Assembly (NCBI GenBank): GCA_946965045.2
Contig: OX337241.1
Span: forward strand, 1,488,001 to 1,552,000
Direction of reading: 5' to 3'
Origin: Epithemia pelagica
Taxonomy: Eukaryota; Protista; Bacillariophyta
Length of the DNA: 64,000 bases
Shown: positions 27,357 through 35,582 of the stretch, piece after piece
Numbering within the stretch: the stretch's first letter is position 1
Layout of the letters: each line of letters opens with the position of its first letter
Position numbers and translations under genes: made by a program
The notes under the pieces: model-generated
Database searches by the model: none
What the model was told of the DNA's origin: nothing
The model's input: the letters and a program-made list of their open reading frames with translations, nothing else

Positions 27357-28295
27357 ATGTTGGTGACACAACGAACATTCATTAACTCGGCTCTGCCAAT
27401 GCTTGGTAGAGGAAGACACTCACATTCACTTGATTTCTCACGTGCTTTTCGCTCTTACTTTGGAATGTCTCCTTTGCTCTGTGTTCATGTGTGGGATGAA
27501 CTGGACAGTTCATTGCCCAAAGGTGCATCGCCTCGTCATTTGTTGTGGACACTGGCTTTTCTGAAAGTCTATGCTACAGAGGATGTTATGGTCTCAATGG
27601 CCAAAACAACGAGGAAGACCTTCAGGAAGTGGGTCAAAGTGTTTGTAGATTTGTTGTATAGTGGTCTTCATTATGTAAGTACATGGCCCTACATGAATTT
27701 GCCATGAAGTCGTCCTCCTCATATCTGACCATTGCTGTTGTTCTTATAACAGATTGTATGGGACAATAGGTTTGATTGTTGTGTACCTGGACAGGTCTGT
27801 TTCATTAGTTTGGATGGTACTGACTTCAGGATTTTGGAGCCGTCACCTTTTGATCCAAAATGGTACTCGCACAAGTTTAAGGGAGCAGGTGTGAGGTATG
27901 AGGTGGGAATCTGCCTGAAAACTGGCTGGATAGTGTGGTGGAATGGTGCATTCCCTTGTGGCGCTTGGCCAGACCTACGGATTGCCAGAGACTGGCTTGT
28001 TCAAGAGCTACTACCGAATGAGAAAGTGATTGCTGATGGTGGTTACAACGATTCTGGATGCTACTTTGTCACACCTACTGGGAGAAATGACTATCAAGAC
28101 AAGATGATGGCAGATGCCAGGGCGAGACGTGAAACTGTCAACAATTTACTGAAACATTACAATATCTTAAAGGAGAAATACAGAGGAGATCTGGATGGGC
28201 ATCACAAGGTGTTTGGAGCAGTGGTGAATCTGGTTCAGATGAAGATTGAAAATGGTGAGGCGAAAGTGTTTCAGATCGAAGTGGAAGATGACTAG
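27357..28295 (+). CDS. Harbinger/PIF-type DDE transposase (exons 27357-27674, 27753-28295; 286 aa)
   Basis: Phase-0 intron GTAAGT...ACAG. Motifs SLDGTDF, YSHKF, RYEVG, NGAFPCG, IADGGY, RARRETVN (D-D-E triad present). Confidence 0.9.
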
Positions 28296-28935
28296 CAGTA
28301 CAAATATGTAGCGGTTATGAACCGGGTGGTGGTGGGTTTTAATAGTACTAGCAGTCAGTATATCATCTTTTGTCGCTAGAGTGTTCTTTATTCAGAAAAA
28401 GCGTTCGGTAACTCCTATAGGTCACAGTCAGTATCTGACTGGTAAGGTAGCGACCTGCTCAGGATTACCCCATCTCCCTGTAAAAGAAATTGTTGGAATC
28501 GAAAGGGACGAAATGGTTGACGTCACTTGACGGAAAGAAACTATACGAGTGACACGACTTTGAGAGAAACCCGCATCTTCCCTGGGGCAACTGCGGACAT
28601 CACATCCCGTCTCCTGTTGCCACATACGAATCTTTCAGACAACAACAATCTCAAAGACACCTCTTGTTTGCTGGTGTGACAAACAGCCAACGCATTTCCT
28701 TCTCCGTCTCATCATTTTTTAAATGCACCGTTTCGGCGCGGCGTTCATGGTTCAATCTTACATCATAGTTCCTACCAAGAGCAAAGATTGCGTGAGGAGA
28801 ATAAGAAGTCCGATATTCACCCATCGATTCAGTCGTCCAAAACGTGAACACAACAAACAGCATTAGCAGAACCGCAATTTGGTGTTGCTATAATTTGGAA
28901 TACGACGACCCAACGAGGTTTGCATTGACACCAAA

Positions 28936-31900
28936 ATGCCATCCTTGTCGGAACTGTTTGACCAAGGCGCACCCTTCCATGACCATTCGTCGTCATGGGG
29001 GGAGGACGAATTTGATTACAGGAATGACTTTTCTGAGGAGGAAGAGTCTTATGGATGGCAAGCATTGTTACACCGTTTCCTGAAGGAGAAAAAAGATGAC
29101 GGTCGAATGGACTACAGTGCCTTGTCGGTTGCCGTCATGACACTCGGTTTGATTATGGTCGTCGAAGTGTTGCGCCATCGCTTGGATCATGCGGCCATGG
29201 GAAAGCCCTATTTTGTGGCTGTTCTCGAAAACATTTATGCGGAATGTAAGCATGCTTAACCATTTTTGAGATTGAAATACGATATACCTATGTCTTTGCA
29301 TTCTAATCAACGATCTTTATTTTTGTATCAGTGACCACCCTTGGTATTGTGGAGTTCTTTGTCTTTCTTCTGCAGAGATACCACACAGCCATGAACAAAG
29401 CGAAGAAAGACGTGTTTGGAGACGTGCATTTTGCTCTGTTTTACACTGCCATTCTCAATGCCTTGTAAGTTCCAACCCCGTGTCGCAGTATGTTCCGTCA
29501 AACACGCATTTTTCTCACTTGTCTATGGTAACAGTCAATCGATGATATTGGCCTTTATTACGCGAAGAGTTTCTCACAAAACTTGGGTGAAAACTGAAGC
29601 CTTGGAGTTGAATCACTACGTGGAAGTGCGCGAGGAATTTGATCGTGTGCGAACCCTGTTGTTCAAGAACCGGGATGCTCCGGATGGAAAGAAGGGTGGA
29701 GCTGGCTCTTCCACCACCAGTGACGAGGATCAAGATGGAAACATTACCAGCAAGAAATCGTCTTCTGACGGCAGCTATGACGGATCCTGGAACGGAATGA
29801 AGTCCTTCATGTCTGGTGTCGTGGACCACATTCGTCGTCCGGGACTGTGGCACAAGTACAACAGCTTGCTGATCCAGGTTCGATTTCACGATTTGCGTAA
29901 ACATTTCTTGATTTCCTACAATTTGCCGCCCAACTTTAAGGTTGCGGATTACTTGGTTCGTTGCGAATTGCATGTACTGATCAAACTTGTGCATGTGTCT
30001 TCTGTTGCCTGGCTCTTGTTGACGGCTTCATTCAACTTGTTGTACTTTCTTCTTGGAGTCATTGGTTACTTTGAAGAGTCTCCGCAGTTGGTTGGGACAG
30101 CTCTTATCTACATTTTCTACTTTGCCTTGTTTGGATTTGTGGTCTTGGCGCTTCTTGTCTTCCACAAAGTCAAGTATATTTTCCAAGAAATTATGCACCG
30201 GAATGAACTTTGGGAATCGACGCTTGCCGAAGAACGACACCGGGAGTTGGCGAAGGAACAAATGCAATTGTTTTGGTTCGGATCGCCCAAGTTGGTCATT
30301 TCTGCGCTTCAGTTTATGCAGTTTGGTTATGCCGTTGCATTGGCGGTAGTCCTGATGTTTTGGGAAACCATTGACGATGCTGATATCAGTATGGGATGGT
30401 ACTTTATGGCCATTTTGCTCTGCTACGGAATTTTCGTGGCGGTAGCTGCCCATGTGATCCCCCGATACACTTTGTGCACAAGTTTGGCCCAACTGGTGGA
30501 TAAGGATCGTTTGAATACTACAGTTGCCAAGTTCCACTTGGAGGAGGCCCGTCGTCAAAGAGAAGAAGAAGCGTACATTGCAGCATACGACAAGGATCAT
30601 CCTCTAGAATCGTACCATTCTACTCTACCAGAAACCATGAGCATGGACCCACACAACCTCCGTTCTTCAGTTTCCTCAGTGTCTTCCTTGTCCACACCTA
30701 CAGAAATTGGTGGTCCCTATGCTCCGATTGAAATGGACTTGGAGGGAGTCGAGAAACAATCCGTCAAGCCCACAGCGGAAGAAGAACGATTCAATCGCCG
30801 TCAAGCAAGACGCCGCCAGCGGAAATCAGTCTCAGATGGAGTTGCGCTCATGGCGTCTCTGAAAGATGTGGAGGAAGAGAAGACTGAAGTTGAAGATGAC
30901 CATTTCCCCACCACAGCACACTCTGTGTCCTCGGAGGAAACTGAAAAATCCCGACGTGATCGTCGCAAGGCAATGTCTGATGGAGTCGCTGCCATGGCTA
31001 GCATGAGATCATCGCGTCCTCGTCCCGGCCTTATTGCCCAAGATTCACAGAGAATTGCGAATTTGGTCGATGTTGACACAGCCTCGCTTCGCGAACAATT
31101 GACTCAGGCCGATTTAATGAAATTTGACAAGAAGTCTCAACGTACCAAGTCTAAATCGGACCCTGAGAGGTTGAAGAGATTATTGAGAAAAGGTCCGAAA
31201 GATGGAGAGGAGAGCACAAACGAGAAGAGACGCAGCATCACGTTTGGGATTCTGCCGTCAAAGAGCCACGACAAAGAGGAAGACTTTGATGACAACCTTA
31301 GTGATGTCGATGACATTCCTGGTGTAGATTATGGTCACCTTGATTCGATTCGAAAAGCTAAGGAACACGAAGAAGAACGCTTGTCGTTTAAGTCACAGTG
31401 TGAGCAGTACTTTTTGTCAAAGAAGTTTCCTGTGTTCAGCAATGTTTTTGGTACAATGGTTGCCTTCTTCTTGATTGGCTCTCGTGTGGAACGTTTCCTT
31501 CACACTGAAGACATTGTTGCGCGTGACTTTATCTCGTTTGATTTTAACGAAACAGTCACATTCTGGATTTTGTCATGCTATTTCATGTTCTTCTTGCTGA
31601 TTGATGCGCTCGCTCTGTATTCGGTTAACCCGAACGGTACACACAGAAAGTCTCGATCCCGGTTCTTGGCAGCATGCATGGACGCTGCCCTCGTTGCGTT
31701 GTGCTGGATTTTGTTCTGGGTAGCTGAATCCAAGCGTTGTTGCAATGAAACAGAAGAATCTCCCGAAGCCAGGTGGTTGGAAGACGAAGACAAGGGGTCC
31801 AATTATGGACCGGCTCCATGCAGTTGCCCTGCGTTCGGTTCGAGATTGTACGGTGGACTTGGAAAGATTGAACCCTTCACCTCTCTCATTGCGTTGCGAT

Positions 31901-33750
31901 TGTTCCGCTTCTTCATCGCGAGAAAAATTGTTAGGAAAAGGAACCGCAAGCTCGGGATCCTTCCTTCCGATCACGACTTGCAGGCAGAATTGAGAGACGA
32001 AGCCAACTTGGACCCTTTCAATGTTAACGAGAGCACACAACGTCATGGCTCTGGTGACGAGGACGATCACGGAGAACACCACGATGGTCATGATGACCAC
32101 GGCCACCATGATCATCAGCGTGGGTCAGCTGCCGAACTTTGGGAGACTGCCATTGCGCAACACCCAGATATTGTCGAAAAATATGGTATGTTTAGTGGTG
32201 AAATTCTTCAACTCATGCTTGGCCTCCCCCTTCCAGTGAATGCTGGTCATGGTAAAACCATGGATAGAGAAGAGACTCCTATCGGGGAAGAAGCATTGGT
32301 CACGGTACCGGGACCTGCCGTGCCTTCGAATTACAAGATTGACGACAAATATTCCAACCTTTCAGTTGGAGCCCAAGAGATCATCATGCAGGGAATGCTC
32401 GGTAAAACTGTCAGGTCTGTTAGCAACTTGGCTGCCCTTGATAGTGTGCAAACAATTCCTGAAGAAACAGAGACCAACAATCGGCCATCCAATTACATGT
32501 TCCAAGTGTCCGATGAAACTTCCGTTGCTCCCGCAGTCAACTTGGATCGACTTCTGTTTGATACCCCTAATGCCCGGCTTGTCCGAAGCATGCGAAGATG
32601 CGATCGTAAACTCCTTCCAATGTTGAACAAATGGTCGTCAGTTGACGTTGTCATGACCAGATTCGAAATGGTTTATTTCGATGCTTCAGAGTTCACCGAT
32701 GTTCCAGAAGCAGATTCAATCATGCAAGCTTTGAAGGCAACCAAGGGAGGAAAGGGGCTTCGACTCAAGGATGTCGCGATGGGCAGGAAGGTCGTTGGTC
32801 ATCTACCAATCTCGGACATAACTTCTCTGGCGATTGAGAGATACATGCCTGTGGAAAATGCAGGAAACGATGGCCATTATACAGATAATTCCCCTCAGAC
32901 TGAATATTGGAAGGAGGGGACGCATAATTATTCGCGGGGAAGTGCTTGGCCTAGAATCGAACAAGATACTCTTGCGGTACATACGTCTCACGGAAACACG
33001 TTGTATTTGCGTTTTTATTCGGACTTGGAAGAAGCTGAGTCGATGCTCAACCGCCCAGCTGACGAACCAATCACCGATGTTAATTTGCGGAAGAACAATG
33101 CGTTCCAATGGGTGCAAACCCTTGGCCGTTTCTGTGGCCCCGATCAGCTTCATCAAAGTTTGCCACATTTTGGTGAAGATAACGACAATGAACTCAGAGA
33201 TTACCTTGTTGTTCACCAACAAAATGAACACAAGAGAAATCTCAATTTCCTCGCAAATCACGGCCCTAACATGCGTAACCAGGAGACTGTCGGAGCTGTT
33301 TCGGAACGTGCTAACAAGAGATTTTCTATTATGAGACTTTCGTCGTTTCATCAACCTGCACCTGCTGCTGACGACGCAGAGAACGTTGAAGGAGCAGACG
33401 AGGTTGATACCAACCCCAACCAAGGTCGCTCCAAGTCCGTTTCTCCGCTCAGAAGATCACTTTCTCCCTTTCAACGGGCAAATTCTTCGGATGACATCGA
33501 TGTGGTCAGTTCCGCTAATAAGTCGAGTTCTCGGGGTTTCAAGAAACGTCCGAATCCAGTTCTCCGTCGATCTCAGTCTCTCAGTGAACTATTGAAGCCG
33601 ACGAAGGAAGAAAACAAGCCGACAGAAGCAAACGATAGTGAAACGCCATCATCACCCATTCCAATGCCAACCGTTGTTGAAGGCGATGGTGGTGCAGTTC
33701 TTGAAAATGGAAGTGCCAGTGTACAACATGATGATGACAGCCCAGTTTAG
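28936..33750 (+). CDS. MLO-like membrane protein with long C-terminal extension (exons 28936-29245, 29332-29464, 29535-33750)
   Basis: Spliced N-terminus ENIYAELTTLGIVEFFVFLL and FWFGSPKLVISALQFMQF resemble MLO signature segments. A second 4-TM block and a beta-rich cytosolic domain follow. Confidence 0.75.
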
Positions 33751-33905
33751 AGCTAATGTATGTGACCTTAAGTAATTTGATGTGAAAGATCTATTTTCAT
33801 GTTTTCTTCGACTTTCCCTTGAAATGTTGAGCTCGATATCGGTACTGTAGACTGAAGTACGAAATGGGAGAACAAAGGGATGTGGCTATAACGAAGGTAG
33901 GGATT

Positions 33906-35027
33906 CTAATCGTTAATTGTAACGTAGCGAAACCACCTACTGGGAGGATGATGGGTCGCTCTGGAGGGCTGGTCGTATGTTGATTCATTTTGGTTTCGGG
34001 CATGCCTTGTTCTGGATGGGGCATTAGAGGCGACCTTCCGGGGAAGTTTCACCAGTCTATTTCTACAGCATCCCCACAACCAGAAAAACCCACAACCCAT
34101 GCTACTACCACTATCGGTCTCTGCGTCCACAGTTTCGATGGCGGCTGCCACAGCGGATCGAGAAATATCTTGGTATCCAAGGAGTGACTGCTCCTGTTCC
34201 AAGATATAAACATTTTCCAACTGCGTGGTTTGATAATACCAATGATGATCCATCCAGAAAAAGGTTTCCATTAGTTCCTGGCTACCACCTCCACTCGAAG
34301 CCTCGTAAGTTGTTGAGTCTTCGTCGCCCGTTGACCATCCGGAAGAGCCTGTGGACGATGAGGATGACGAGTAGAACAGTTCCGTAGACTGATTTGCACT
34401 CACTGGTGAGACCGGTTCCACTATTTTGACACCCAATAAGACAGGATCCACCACCGTCTCATGTTCCTCGGTGGGAGGGGAAGATGCTTCCATATAGGCA
34501 GAAGATGAGACACGTGATTGCTCATGGAAACAAAGTTGTGCATAGGGGCCGGACTCGTGGTGCAAAATGACTTCACTCGGTGGTCTGCAATTGCTCTCAA
34601 CCGAGTTATAGGTCATTTCACCATCGTCCAACAATATGGTTCCTTTGCAATGTCTCAAGGACAGTGCAGTTTCAAGCATGGGTGTGACAGTACTCAGCTT
34701 CAACGAGACCATGGACAATCGAGATCCCGCGTTTGGGTTTTCGTTGTTGCAACTGCGTTGTGCTGCTGACCCCATCGATTCTCCATCAGAATTTTGGGGA
34801 CTACTACTGGAAGTGCTCATGGTCCGTGCCCCATCGTGGTGGTGCATATCGCCGTCGTTGGACGTCACTGTGCTCCAACTCCTCATTCTCGAAAACGAAG
34901 CATCCGATAGACTTTTAGAAGAAATGACAGTCGATCTCCATGAATCACTTCGTTGATCTTGTTCCTCCTGGCTGTTGGAACATCGAGATAAGGGTGAGTG
35001 GAATACCATCGAGATGGAACCGGCCAT
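33906..35027 (-). CDS. Hypothetical Ser-rich, largely disordered protein
   Basis: Open ORF of about 373 aa from the first ATG. No family motif recognised. Confidence 0.55.
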   Translation of the reverse strand: MAGSISMVFHSPLSRCSNSQEEQDQRSDSWRSTVISSKSLSDASFSRMRSWSTVTSNDGDMHHHDGARTMSTSSSSPQNSDGESMGSAAQRSCNNENPNAGSRLSMVSLKLSTVTPMLETALSLRHCKGTILLDDGEMTYNSVESNCRPPSEVILHHESGPYAQLCFHEQSRVSSSAYMEASSPPTEEHETVVDPVLLGVKIVEPVSPVSANQSTELFYSSSSSSTGSSGWSTGDEDSTTYEASSGGGSQELMETFFWMDHHWYYQTTQLENVYILEQEQSLLGYQDISRSAVAAAIETVDAETDSGSSMGCGFFWLWGCCRNRLVKLPRKVASNAPSRTRHARNQNESTYDQPSRATHHPPSRWFRYVTIND

Positions 35028-35582
35028 TGTACATATGCTCTTGGAAAACACAAAGTTATGCAAAACATAACTCTAAGGATCCTTCGCAAAACGGGAACTG
35101 CTGGCGAGGCACGTATCGTGGAGGATCGGAATGACTTCGTTCCGTTTTTCGCACCAATATTGTAACCGTGACTATACACCACCACGAAGCGCAGGGGCGA
35201 GATAAAAGGTGCGAAGCAGTCTGTATACACGGTCCGTCGGCGAAAATATTTAATTTTCATTCCTGGCCTTTACCTTTCCTTGGTTCTCTTCGAAATAATG
35301 TTACCCAAACACCCGTGGTCAAATCAGCTGCGGCACTTCCACGGGTACGAGATTTTGCCAGCTCGCACCAGCATCATCTGCACCATAACCGCTACTGTTG
35401 CGTAACGGAACACACCAAAAACCACTCACTCGTATCAAAGTTCGCCCGAAGAGATTCCTAATTTACTTCATTTACTTGGCCCCGAGGAATTTGCGGAGTC
35501 GAACCCACGACAAGGACCCGAGACGAAATGAAATGAATGGCAATCGTTGGTTCTACTCAACTACATCGTCCTTTCCAGGGAT

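Follow-up and report, generated by a model that had tools for sequence, protein, structure and literature searches.

A diatom MLO-family protein with a conserved C-terminal four-helix membrane bundle and PH-superfold domain

A 64,000-nucleotide stretch of the genome of the diatom Epithemia pelagica (the window: positions 1,488,001 to 1,552,000 of contig OX337241.1, assembly GCA_946965045.2) carries on its plus strand, at 28936-33750, one real, spliced, expressed gene for a protein with 11 transmembrane (TM) helices. The protein joins a divergent MLO-family module of seven TM helices to a second membrane block of four (the 4-TM block), and ends in a domain of predicted PH superfold. Its relatives share a fixed order: the MLO module; a linker of about 300 residues with two basic motifs; the four-helix bundle; a His-rich stretch; and the PH-superfold domain. 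An MLO-family protein with this C-terminal extension is conserved across the diatoms, and no prior description of it was found. The best explanation overall, held here with a probability of roughly 0.6, is a single diatom gene that encodes a divergent MLO core with a built-in 4-TM/PH regulatory and anchoring unit. Direct support covers the gene model together with its splicing, the kinship of the first module with MLO proteins, the PH fold, the bundle with both ends inside and conserved buried charges, and the conservation of the domain order.

Removal of two GT..AG introns leaves a single frame of 4659 nucleotides, 1552 codons with one terminal stop, from the ATG at 28936 to the stop codon at 33748-33750. 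The original prediction, read from the window's letters, had given the same start and the same end at 33750; its estimate of about 1590 residues for the product was slightly too high. In unspliced DNA, the list of open reading frames (ORFs) shows a plus-strand frame of 1444 codons (29416-33750), with two short coding blocks in phase upstream of it. The splice signals are legible in the DNA: the first intron has the donor gtaagc after 29245 and the acceptor ...tatcag before 29332; the second has the donor gtaagt after 29464 and the acceptor ...taacag before 29535. Each of the two junctions lies inside an ungapped conserved block of the family alignment, and exon 1 aligns Met-to-Met with an Epithemia homologue, P0002 (58% identity, E = 2e-38). 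Because exon 3 by itself encodes everything from TM3 of the first module to the C terminus, the single-gene reading is secure.

Four public runs from the same organism, X1 to X4, were compared with the gene over 28850-33850. Runs X1, X2, and X3 hold the genomic, unspliced form. In run X4, a contig of 2110 letters has both joints precisely as predicted, at 29245>29332 and 29464>29535. The run type of X4 is not on record; an intron-less contig is the form that an RNA-derived assembly would give. The X4 contigs tile 28850-33716 and reveal no additional intron. They break near 30950 and near 31300; the DNA runs break at these positions too, which marks the breaks as allelic variation and not as ends of transcripts.

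A word-indexed search with the exon-3 protein found 62 homologues of 888-1996 residues (E from 0 to 4e-92), aligned over all modules. An exhaustive HMMER search with a profile of the 4-TM block, run against 1.84 billion representatives, returned 250 cluster representatives at E <= 0.001, of which the best 150 were listed. Architectures were counted by scanning profiles of the three modules against 226 fetched proteins. MLO-4TM-PH was found in 121, MLO only in 46, 4TM-PH only in 41, 4TM only in 15, and MLO-4TM in 3; the domain order first noticed in the window thus recurs in at least 121 database proteins, and the claim that it belongs to one gene holds. The remaining categories require care. 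For two partial proteins, P0125 (4TM-PH only) and P0079 (MLO only), the missing half adjoins on the same strand, across an intron-sized gap (these two proteins were tested on their contigs; L001:2-3500, L002:1345-6450, L003). Both are gene-calling artefacts, intron-split pieces of one full gene, which shows that many of the 'short' database relatives arise from gene calling across introns. Since gene callers split these genes, architecture counts for the family from metagenome protein sets are unreliable. The idea that 'MLO-only' and '4TM-PH-only' paralogues mark separate ancestral genes was rejected for these two cases.

Every organism-named member comes from a diatom. The genera are Epithemia, Amphora, Amphiprora, Seminavis, Fistulifera, Cylindrotheca, Thalassionema, Odontella, Attheya, Cyclotella, Stephanodiscus, Proboscia, and Phaeodactylum, and they cover the raphid, araphid, polar-centric, and radial-centric diatoms. 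The closest named relative is from Epithemia clementina (61% identity). Transcriptome-derived homologues with the same order include MMETSP sequences from Amphiprora, Odontella, Thalassionema, and Proboscia, together with a 'type:complete' transcript, P0046; the MMETSP members are independent transcript evidence for the fusion in relatives. The Phaeodactylum tricornutum orthologue (P0246; XP_002179592.1; B7FXP5) has 1498 residues, is annotated "predicted protein", and has no Pfam match at E <= 0.01. Literature searches on MLO in diatoms or Phaeodactylum, on MLO with a voltage sensor, and on the Phaeodactylum accession found nothing relevant.

The N-terminal module has the layout of an MLO protein: seven TM segments, a large loop between TM3 and TM4, and a C terminus that is cytosolic as judged by the positive-inside rule only. 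Hydropathy places the segments at residues 61-83 (TM1), 100-118 (TM2), 138-156 (TM3), 299-324 (TM4), 338-358 (TM5), 405-425 (TM6), and 438-458 (TM7), with a TM3-TM4 loop of about 140 residues (157-295); IPRYTLCTSLAQLVD and an amphipathic helix follow TM7. The sole Pfam family found in this module is Mlo (PF03094; profile length 483, gathering cutoff 24 bits), which matches at 20.8 bits (E = 1.5e-4) over profile positions 236-450.

Two observations weigh against the MLO assignment. The window protein's score lies under the cutoff, and only TM3-TM7 aligns to the profile, the first third of which (TM1 to the first outer loop) is left unaligned. Moreover, the extracellular Cys residues invariant in plants (barley C86, C98, and C114 in EC1, and C367 in EC3; bioRxiv 10.64898/2026.04.10.716904) lack counterparts in this protein: the outer loops between TM2 and TM3 (residues 119-137, RYHTAMNKAKKDVFGDVH) and between TM6 and TM7 (residues 426-437) are short and contain no Cys. 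These residues are a plant-clade feature, and non-plant MLO-like proteins are hard to align around them (Kusch et al. 2016, PMC4824068). The support for membership is transitive: it comes through the homologues, and not from the sequence of the window protein taken by itself. Of 30 homologues, 18 match Mlo in their N-terminal regions, with a best E of 5e-12. Five exceed the cutoff: P0059 (48.1 bits), P0047 (44.9), P0058 (35.6), P0045 (33.6), and P0035 (27.8). They use consistent profile positions (146-470) and match the window protein at whole-protein E <= 1e-120. As the Mlo-scoring proteins are unambiguous full-length homologues, the window module is best classed as a divergent member of the MLO family, in keeping with the MLO-like N terminus of the original prediction. 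A search of PDB sequences with the MLO profile found no solved MLO structure.

Plant MLOs and the diatom protein have in common the seven TM helices, the long cytoplasmic TM3-TM4 loop, and a cytosolic tail that opens with a conserved helix; the resemblance to Pfam Mlo is significant from TM3 through TM7 and in the proximal part of the tail. A conserved amphipathic stretch after TM7 (RLNTTVAKFHLEEARRQ; consensus RLxETVAxFxLEEAKR) is the candidate position of the plant-type calmodulin-binding helix. The two differ greatly in what comes next. The diatom protein is three times longer, and its tail has four more TM helices and a PH fold, whereas the plant tail is short, calmodulin-binding, and disordered. 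MLO-like proteins have been described from oomycetes, Ectocarpus, alveolates, and other lineages, with no mention of diatoms, and their fusion partners include calmodulin-like EF-hand, glycosyl hydrolase, RNase H-like, LEA, and mechanosensitive-channel domains; no fusion to a TM bundle or a PH domain was reported in that survey (Kusch et al. 2016, PMC4824068). Like the protist MLO/EF-hand fusions (PMC4824068), the diatom protein attaches a C-terminal regulatory module to a non-plant MLO-like module, but its partners are an extra TM bundle and a PH fold.

The C-terminal conserved domain is modelled by AlphaFold2 (mean predicted local distance difference test, pLDDT, 83) as a seven-stranded antiparallel β-sandwich closed by a C-terminal helix, the organization of a PH domain. 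The predicted strands lie at model residues 169-176, 179-189, 193-202, 233-240, 244-252, 292-299, and 304-309, and the helix at 337-354, with pLDDT mostly above 90. All of the top 50 Foldseek matches are PH domains (Btk PH-TH, E = 1.2e-4, probability 1.00; GRK2, Dbs, Vav1, ArhGAP9, CARMIL). All of the top 50 VIA-align matches likewise have the PH superfold, at Z 7.4-9.2 over model residues 151-354, with root-mean-square deviations (rmsd) of mostly 2.2-3.8 Å and a few up to 6.7 Å. One result speaks against the assignment: no Pfam PH-clan (CL0266) model matches any of 59 members at E <= 1, and the PH fold is therefore visible only through structure. The β-rich domain placed by the original prediction at 32575-33135 agrees well with the PH core at 32539-33150, and its PH-like character is upheld by both aligners; the profile check proposed for it returned nothing.

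The likeness to known PH domains (Btk PH-TH, SKAP-Hom, ARAP3, GRK2, Dbs/Trio) covers the seven-stranded sandwich, the C-terminal helix cap, and a basic cluster at strand 1, with VIA-align Z up to 9.2 and rmsd of about 2.7-2.9 Å over 97-109 residues. The differences are also plain. Sequence identity is 9-14%; a helix pair is inserted between strands 3 and 4, along with a low-confidence loop of about 40 residues; and extra conserved elements at the N-terminal side (residues 1013-1110) appear in the model to be packed on the domain. The first of these, residues 1013-1046, is modelled as three short helices (pLDDT 87-95). The basic cluster, ARLVRSMRRCDRK, lies on and before strand 1 (R1165, R1168, R1169 invariant, R1172, K1173), in the strand 1-strand 2 region where a phosphoinositide-binding motif would be expected; K1221 and R1224, in a loop, add to the basic residues. 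This cluster and a conserved TKGGKGLRL loop are candidate ligand sites.

The 4-TM block is the module whose nature is most contested. An AlphaFold2 model built from 62 sequences (pLDDT 85; predicted template modelling score, pTM, 0.80) shows four long helices (model residues 19-46, 61-85, 93-121, and 168-195) after a short pre-helix, with low confidence in the loop between helices 3 and 4. In the protein these are S1 (778-805), S2 (820-844), S3 (852-880), an outer loop (881-926), and S4 (927-954; IEPFTSLIALRLFRFFIARKIVRK). Hydropathy shows TM segments over residues 779-877, and the fourth helix comes from the model. From loop to loop the charge switches between basic on the inner side and acidic on the outer, as the positive-inside rule predicts for four antiparallel TM helices with both ends in the cytosol. 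The coordinates of the original prediction for this block, 31425-31930 (residues 779-946), were accurate, and the motifs that it quoted for this block and the β-rich domain (FFLLIDAL, CMDAALV, IALRLFRFFIARK, and AFQWVQTL) are all present in the protein. Conservation is concentrated in charged, aromatic, and Cys residues (Table 1). In sum, this is a genuine and conserved bundle of four membrane helices that bears charges and, according to the model, resembles a voltage-sensor domain (VSD) in its topology and in where the charges sit.

Is it a voltage sensor? The reading that survives best, with a little less than an even chance of being right, is that the block is a structural bundle peculiar to this lineage, with no relation to voltage sensors, in which the buried Arg/Asp pair has a structural task. 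Such a bundle would serve for oligomerisation, for packing on the MLO helices, for trafficking, or for bringing the chain back to the membrane, which would place the PH-like domain at the bilayer. Sequence comparison links the block to no known family. Pfam finds no Ion_trans (PF00520) match in the whole window protein at E <= 1, nor in any of the 62 block sequences at E <= 10. What Pfam does find among the 62 blocks (MARVEL in four, best E 0.036; Voltage_CLC in two; Claudin_2 in one) is weak and scattered, and was treated as noise. A profile of the block retrieves no VSD from PDB sequences, its best match being a designed repeat protein (E = 0.029), and an S4-only profile retrieves 0 matches at E <= 10. 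The best 150 of the 250 matches from the exhaustive search are the MLO-4TM-PH family or its fragments, with no merging into Ion_trans; within those 150 the block never stands apart from the MLO and PH-like modules, save in gene-call fragments. As that list holds only the block's own family, it gives no view of remote relatives.

The structural comparisons are equivocal, and part of them falls on the same side. The Foldseek search of the block against the PDB is not significant (best E 1.0, TM-score 0.27-0.39). A shape search of the ESM Atlas gives TM-scores of 0.38-0.50 to mixed families, among them a mechanosensitive (MS) channel, CatSper2, FliS, and MerC. In VIA-align, de novo four-helix bundles reach Z 10-11.7, at least as high as any VSD, so that the matches as a whole are those of a generic up-down four-helix bundle; for helical bundles, Z below about 13 is uninformative. 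The conserved disulfide-type Cys pattern (RCC, CxC) of the outer loop suggests a folded ectoloop, commoner in structural 4-TM proteins. A tetraspanin-like reading prompted by the same RCC and CxC motifs in the TM3-TM4 loop of the block was dropped, as no tetraspanin appears among the structural matches or among the 25 weak Pfam families listed out of 45. The structural bundle does not account for everything: invariant charges deep in three of the four helices, at the depths expected of a VSD, exceed what packing needs, and voltage sensors are the most frequent class of membrane protein among the structural matches.

The competing view is that the block is homologous to voltage sensors, which would justify the term 'VSD-like'; this is rather less likely than not. 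In its full form this view has a similar or slightly lower probability: the block would be a true VSD, homologous to the S1-S4 units of channels, Hv1, and Ci-VSP, and would gate the MLO pore or drive the PH-like domain by membrane potential. The resemblance to known VSDs (PF00520, Hv1, Ci-VSP) has several parts. All have four antiparallel helices with N and C termini inside, preceded by a short amphipathic helix; the block has a 3-spaced Arg pair in helix 4 (R936-x-x-R939, invariant), an Asp in the inner half of helix 3, a conserved Phe in mid helix 2, and a Glu at the outer end of each of S1 and S3. Where the S4 of a VSD would have three or more basic residues at every third position, the residue at +6, counted from R936, is hydrophobic here, and K/R recurs at +8 and +9. 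In the VIA-align list, about 23 of the first 50 rows are VSDs (Z 8-10.4). They come from Nav, Cav, Kv, TPC, Hv1, Ci-VSP, CatSper, NALCN, and SLC9C1; a Nav1.7 VS2 chimera has Z 10.4 with 130 residues aligned, Ci-VSP, TPC3, and Cav1.2 have Z 9.8, and further rows include Nav1.5 and Kv4. Protein-language-model neighbours are Ion_trans/Hv1 clusters, with scores of 0.78-0.86 (0.86 for the window block, 0.80 for P0046), values that below 0.9 count as leads only; P0059, the third member tested, had no neighbour. In Ci-VSP, as in the diatom protein, a cytosolic domain of lipid-binding type follows the bundle.

Several features weigh against a working sensor of the familiar kind, beside the missing Ion_trans signal. 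Just two Arg residues keep the 3-residue spacing; the S3-S4 loop, of about 45 residues and rich in Cys, is atypical; and neither a pore domain nor a phosphatase follows the bundle. Among the residues of the charge-transfer centre, F834 and D864 are each found in 61 of the 62 members and the acidic D838 of S2 in 30, with Ser in 20. Of the acidic counter-charges named for S2 and S3 in the original prediction, the S3 Asp is near-invariant and the Asp of FFLLIDAL is not conserved. The voltage-sensor claim as a whole stands neither proven nor disproved. Topology, R-x-x-R, the S3 Asp, the S2 Phe, and about half of the structural list speak for it; the lack of an Ion_trans match, Foldseek E >= 1, the tie with designed bundles, and the variable S2 acid speak against it. 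The proposed superposition on VSDs can be made with solved structures, but no better than on designed bundles.

The notion that the long protein is an annotation artefact, in which adjacent MLO-like and 4-TM/PH genes are read through by chance, takes its appeal from the 'MLO-only' and '4TM-PH-only' database proteins and is effectively refuted by the one 1404-codon frame of exon 3 that runs from TM3 to the end, by the X4 contigs that tile it, by the transcriptome-derived homologues that keep the same order, and by the two partial proteins separated from their missing halves by introns only.

The preferred explanation, an MLO core with a built-in 4-TM/PH unit, suggests how the modules might work together. 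Plant MLOs are reported to be Ca2+-permeable channels (PMC9810639), and have been proposed to form trimers with a central pore lined by TM2 and TM3 (bioRxiv 10.64898/2026.05.18.725938, 10.64898/2026.04.10.716904). By analogy, the diatom MLO module would be the transport core, an oligomeric Ca2+-permeable pathway. The 4-TM/PH unit, which takes the place of the short plant tail, would serve for regulation and anchoring within the same chain. With its buried charges (two Arg in helix 4, the Asp of helix 3, the Glu residues at outer ends) it could sense the membrane field or an ion. The bundle would hold the PH-like domain at the inner leaflet, where the conserved basic surface of that domain could bind acidic lipids or a partner.

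The most likely function, then, is an MLO-type cation (Ca2+) pathway with a membrane-embedded, lipid-proximal regulatory unit, in which conduction, sensing, and coupling are each conjectural. We know of no experiment that shows ion conduction by any non-plant MLO, which counts against this function. Regulation of the MLO pore by voltage, pH, or lipids, as first suggested for this gene, is pure inference. An improbable further reading makes the bundle a functional sensor of voltage (or of protons or ions) in permanent linkage with a Ca2+ pathway of MLO type, with the PH fold as effector or lipid clamp.

The proposal that MLO proteins are Ca2+-permeable channels is recent. Natural domain fusions often indicate functional partners or regulatory inputs. 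From the diatom fusion, one would look for such inputs to MLO activity in the membrane potential, in ions, or in lipids of the inner leaflet; as a 'Rosetta stone' fusion it might, if the reading is right, hint at how MLO channels are gated. A voltage-sensing bundle, if true, would make this the first case of a voltage-sensor module joined to a non-P-loop channel with an MLO scaffold, and would mean a second, unrecognised class of excitable Ca2+ entry in diatoms. The family has escaped notice so far: the Phaeodactylum member is only a "predicted protein", and the main MLO phylogeny paper is without diatoms. Because Phaeodactylum is genetically tractable, the hypothesis is directly testable.

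The cytosolic linker, about 300 residues of charged and mostly variable sequence between the MLO module and the 4-TM block, contains a conserved basic motif, RRxxS-DGV, present in one to four copies in 54 of the 62 family members. To judge from their sequence, these motifs look like a basophilic-kinase or calmodulin-type site. Positions of all features are collected in Table 1.

Table 1. Features of the gene and its 1552-residue product. Nucleotide positions are those of the window; fractions are counts among the 62 family members.
Feature	Position	Strand	Details
Exon 1	28936..29245	+	residues 1-103 plus one base; acidic N-terminal extension and TM1 (residues 61-83)
Intron 1	29246..29331	+	86 nucleotides, GT..AG; skipped in X4 contig record 25, retained in DNA-type runs X1-X3
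Exon 2	29332..29464	+	residues 104-148; TM2 (ELTTLGIVEFFVFLL), short outer loop, start of TM3; block ungapped in homologues
Intron 2	29465..29534	+	70 nucleotides, GT..AG; joint 29464>29535 in X4 contig
Exon 3	29535..33750	+	1404 codons plus stop; TM3 of MLO module, linker, 4-TM block, PH-like domain, tail
MLO-like 7-TM module and proximal tail	29116..30591	+	residues 61-500, across both introns; hydropathy, Pfam Mlo
Two copies of conserved basic motif	30811..30987	+	RRQRKSVSDGVALMAS (from residue 574), RRDRRKAMSDGVAAMAS (from residue 621)
Second membrane block	31387..31953	+	residues 766-954; AlphaFold2 model and family conservation
R798 / E800	outer end of helix 1		62/62, 58/62
F824 / W825 / F834	helix 2		60/62, 57/62, 61/62
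D864	inner half of helix 3		61/62
E879, R882, C883, C884	end of helix 3		60/62, 62/62, 61/62, 62/62
CxCPxFGSRxYGGLG	outer loop		conserved motif; Cys-rich loop also includes RCC
E927 / P928	start of helix 4		62/62, 61/62
R936 / R939	helix 4		61/62, 62/62
K/R at 944 / 945	helix 4 (+8/+9)		47/62, 41/62
His-rich (H-G/H-D) stretch	32044..32115	+	residues 985-1008, directly after S4
Conserved helical segment	32128..32229	+	residues 1013-1046, ELWETAIAQHPDIVEKYGMFSGEILQLMLG; invariant W, G, F, S, M, L columns
PH-superfold domain (predicted)	32539..33216	+	core residues 1150-1353 (32539-33150), extended to 1375; seven strands and capping helix NAFQWVQTLGRFCG
C-terminal tail	33217..33747	+	residues 1376-1552; rich in Ser, Pro, and basic residues; low occupancy and conservation in family alignment

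At the position just after S4, 33 of the 62 family members have at least four His within 20 residues. In sequence, the His-rich repeat may be likened to the metal-binding loops of metal transporters.

Within the linker, a second form of 30901-30943 is seen in all four runs. It skips 41 nucleotides and inserts CC, a net change of 39 nucleotides that removes 13 codons in frame from the variable linker (at about residues 604-617). In the DNA-type runs this form accounts for about half of the total contig depth, and it therefore looks like a heterozygous allele.

Immediately downstream of the gene, and convergent with it, is an ORF on the minus strand (33906-35063) for a Ser-rich product of 385 residues; a Pfam search with it gave no match. 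Just upstream, a plus-strand ORF (27810-28292) matches DDE_Tnp_4 (E = 1.5e-8, 34.9 bits), a transposase of Harbinger/PIF type.

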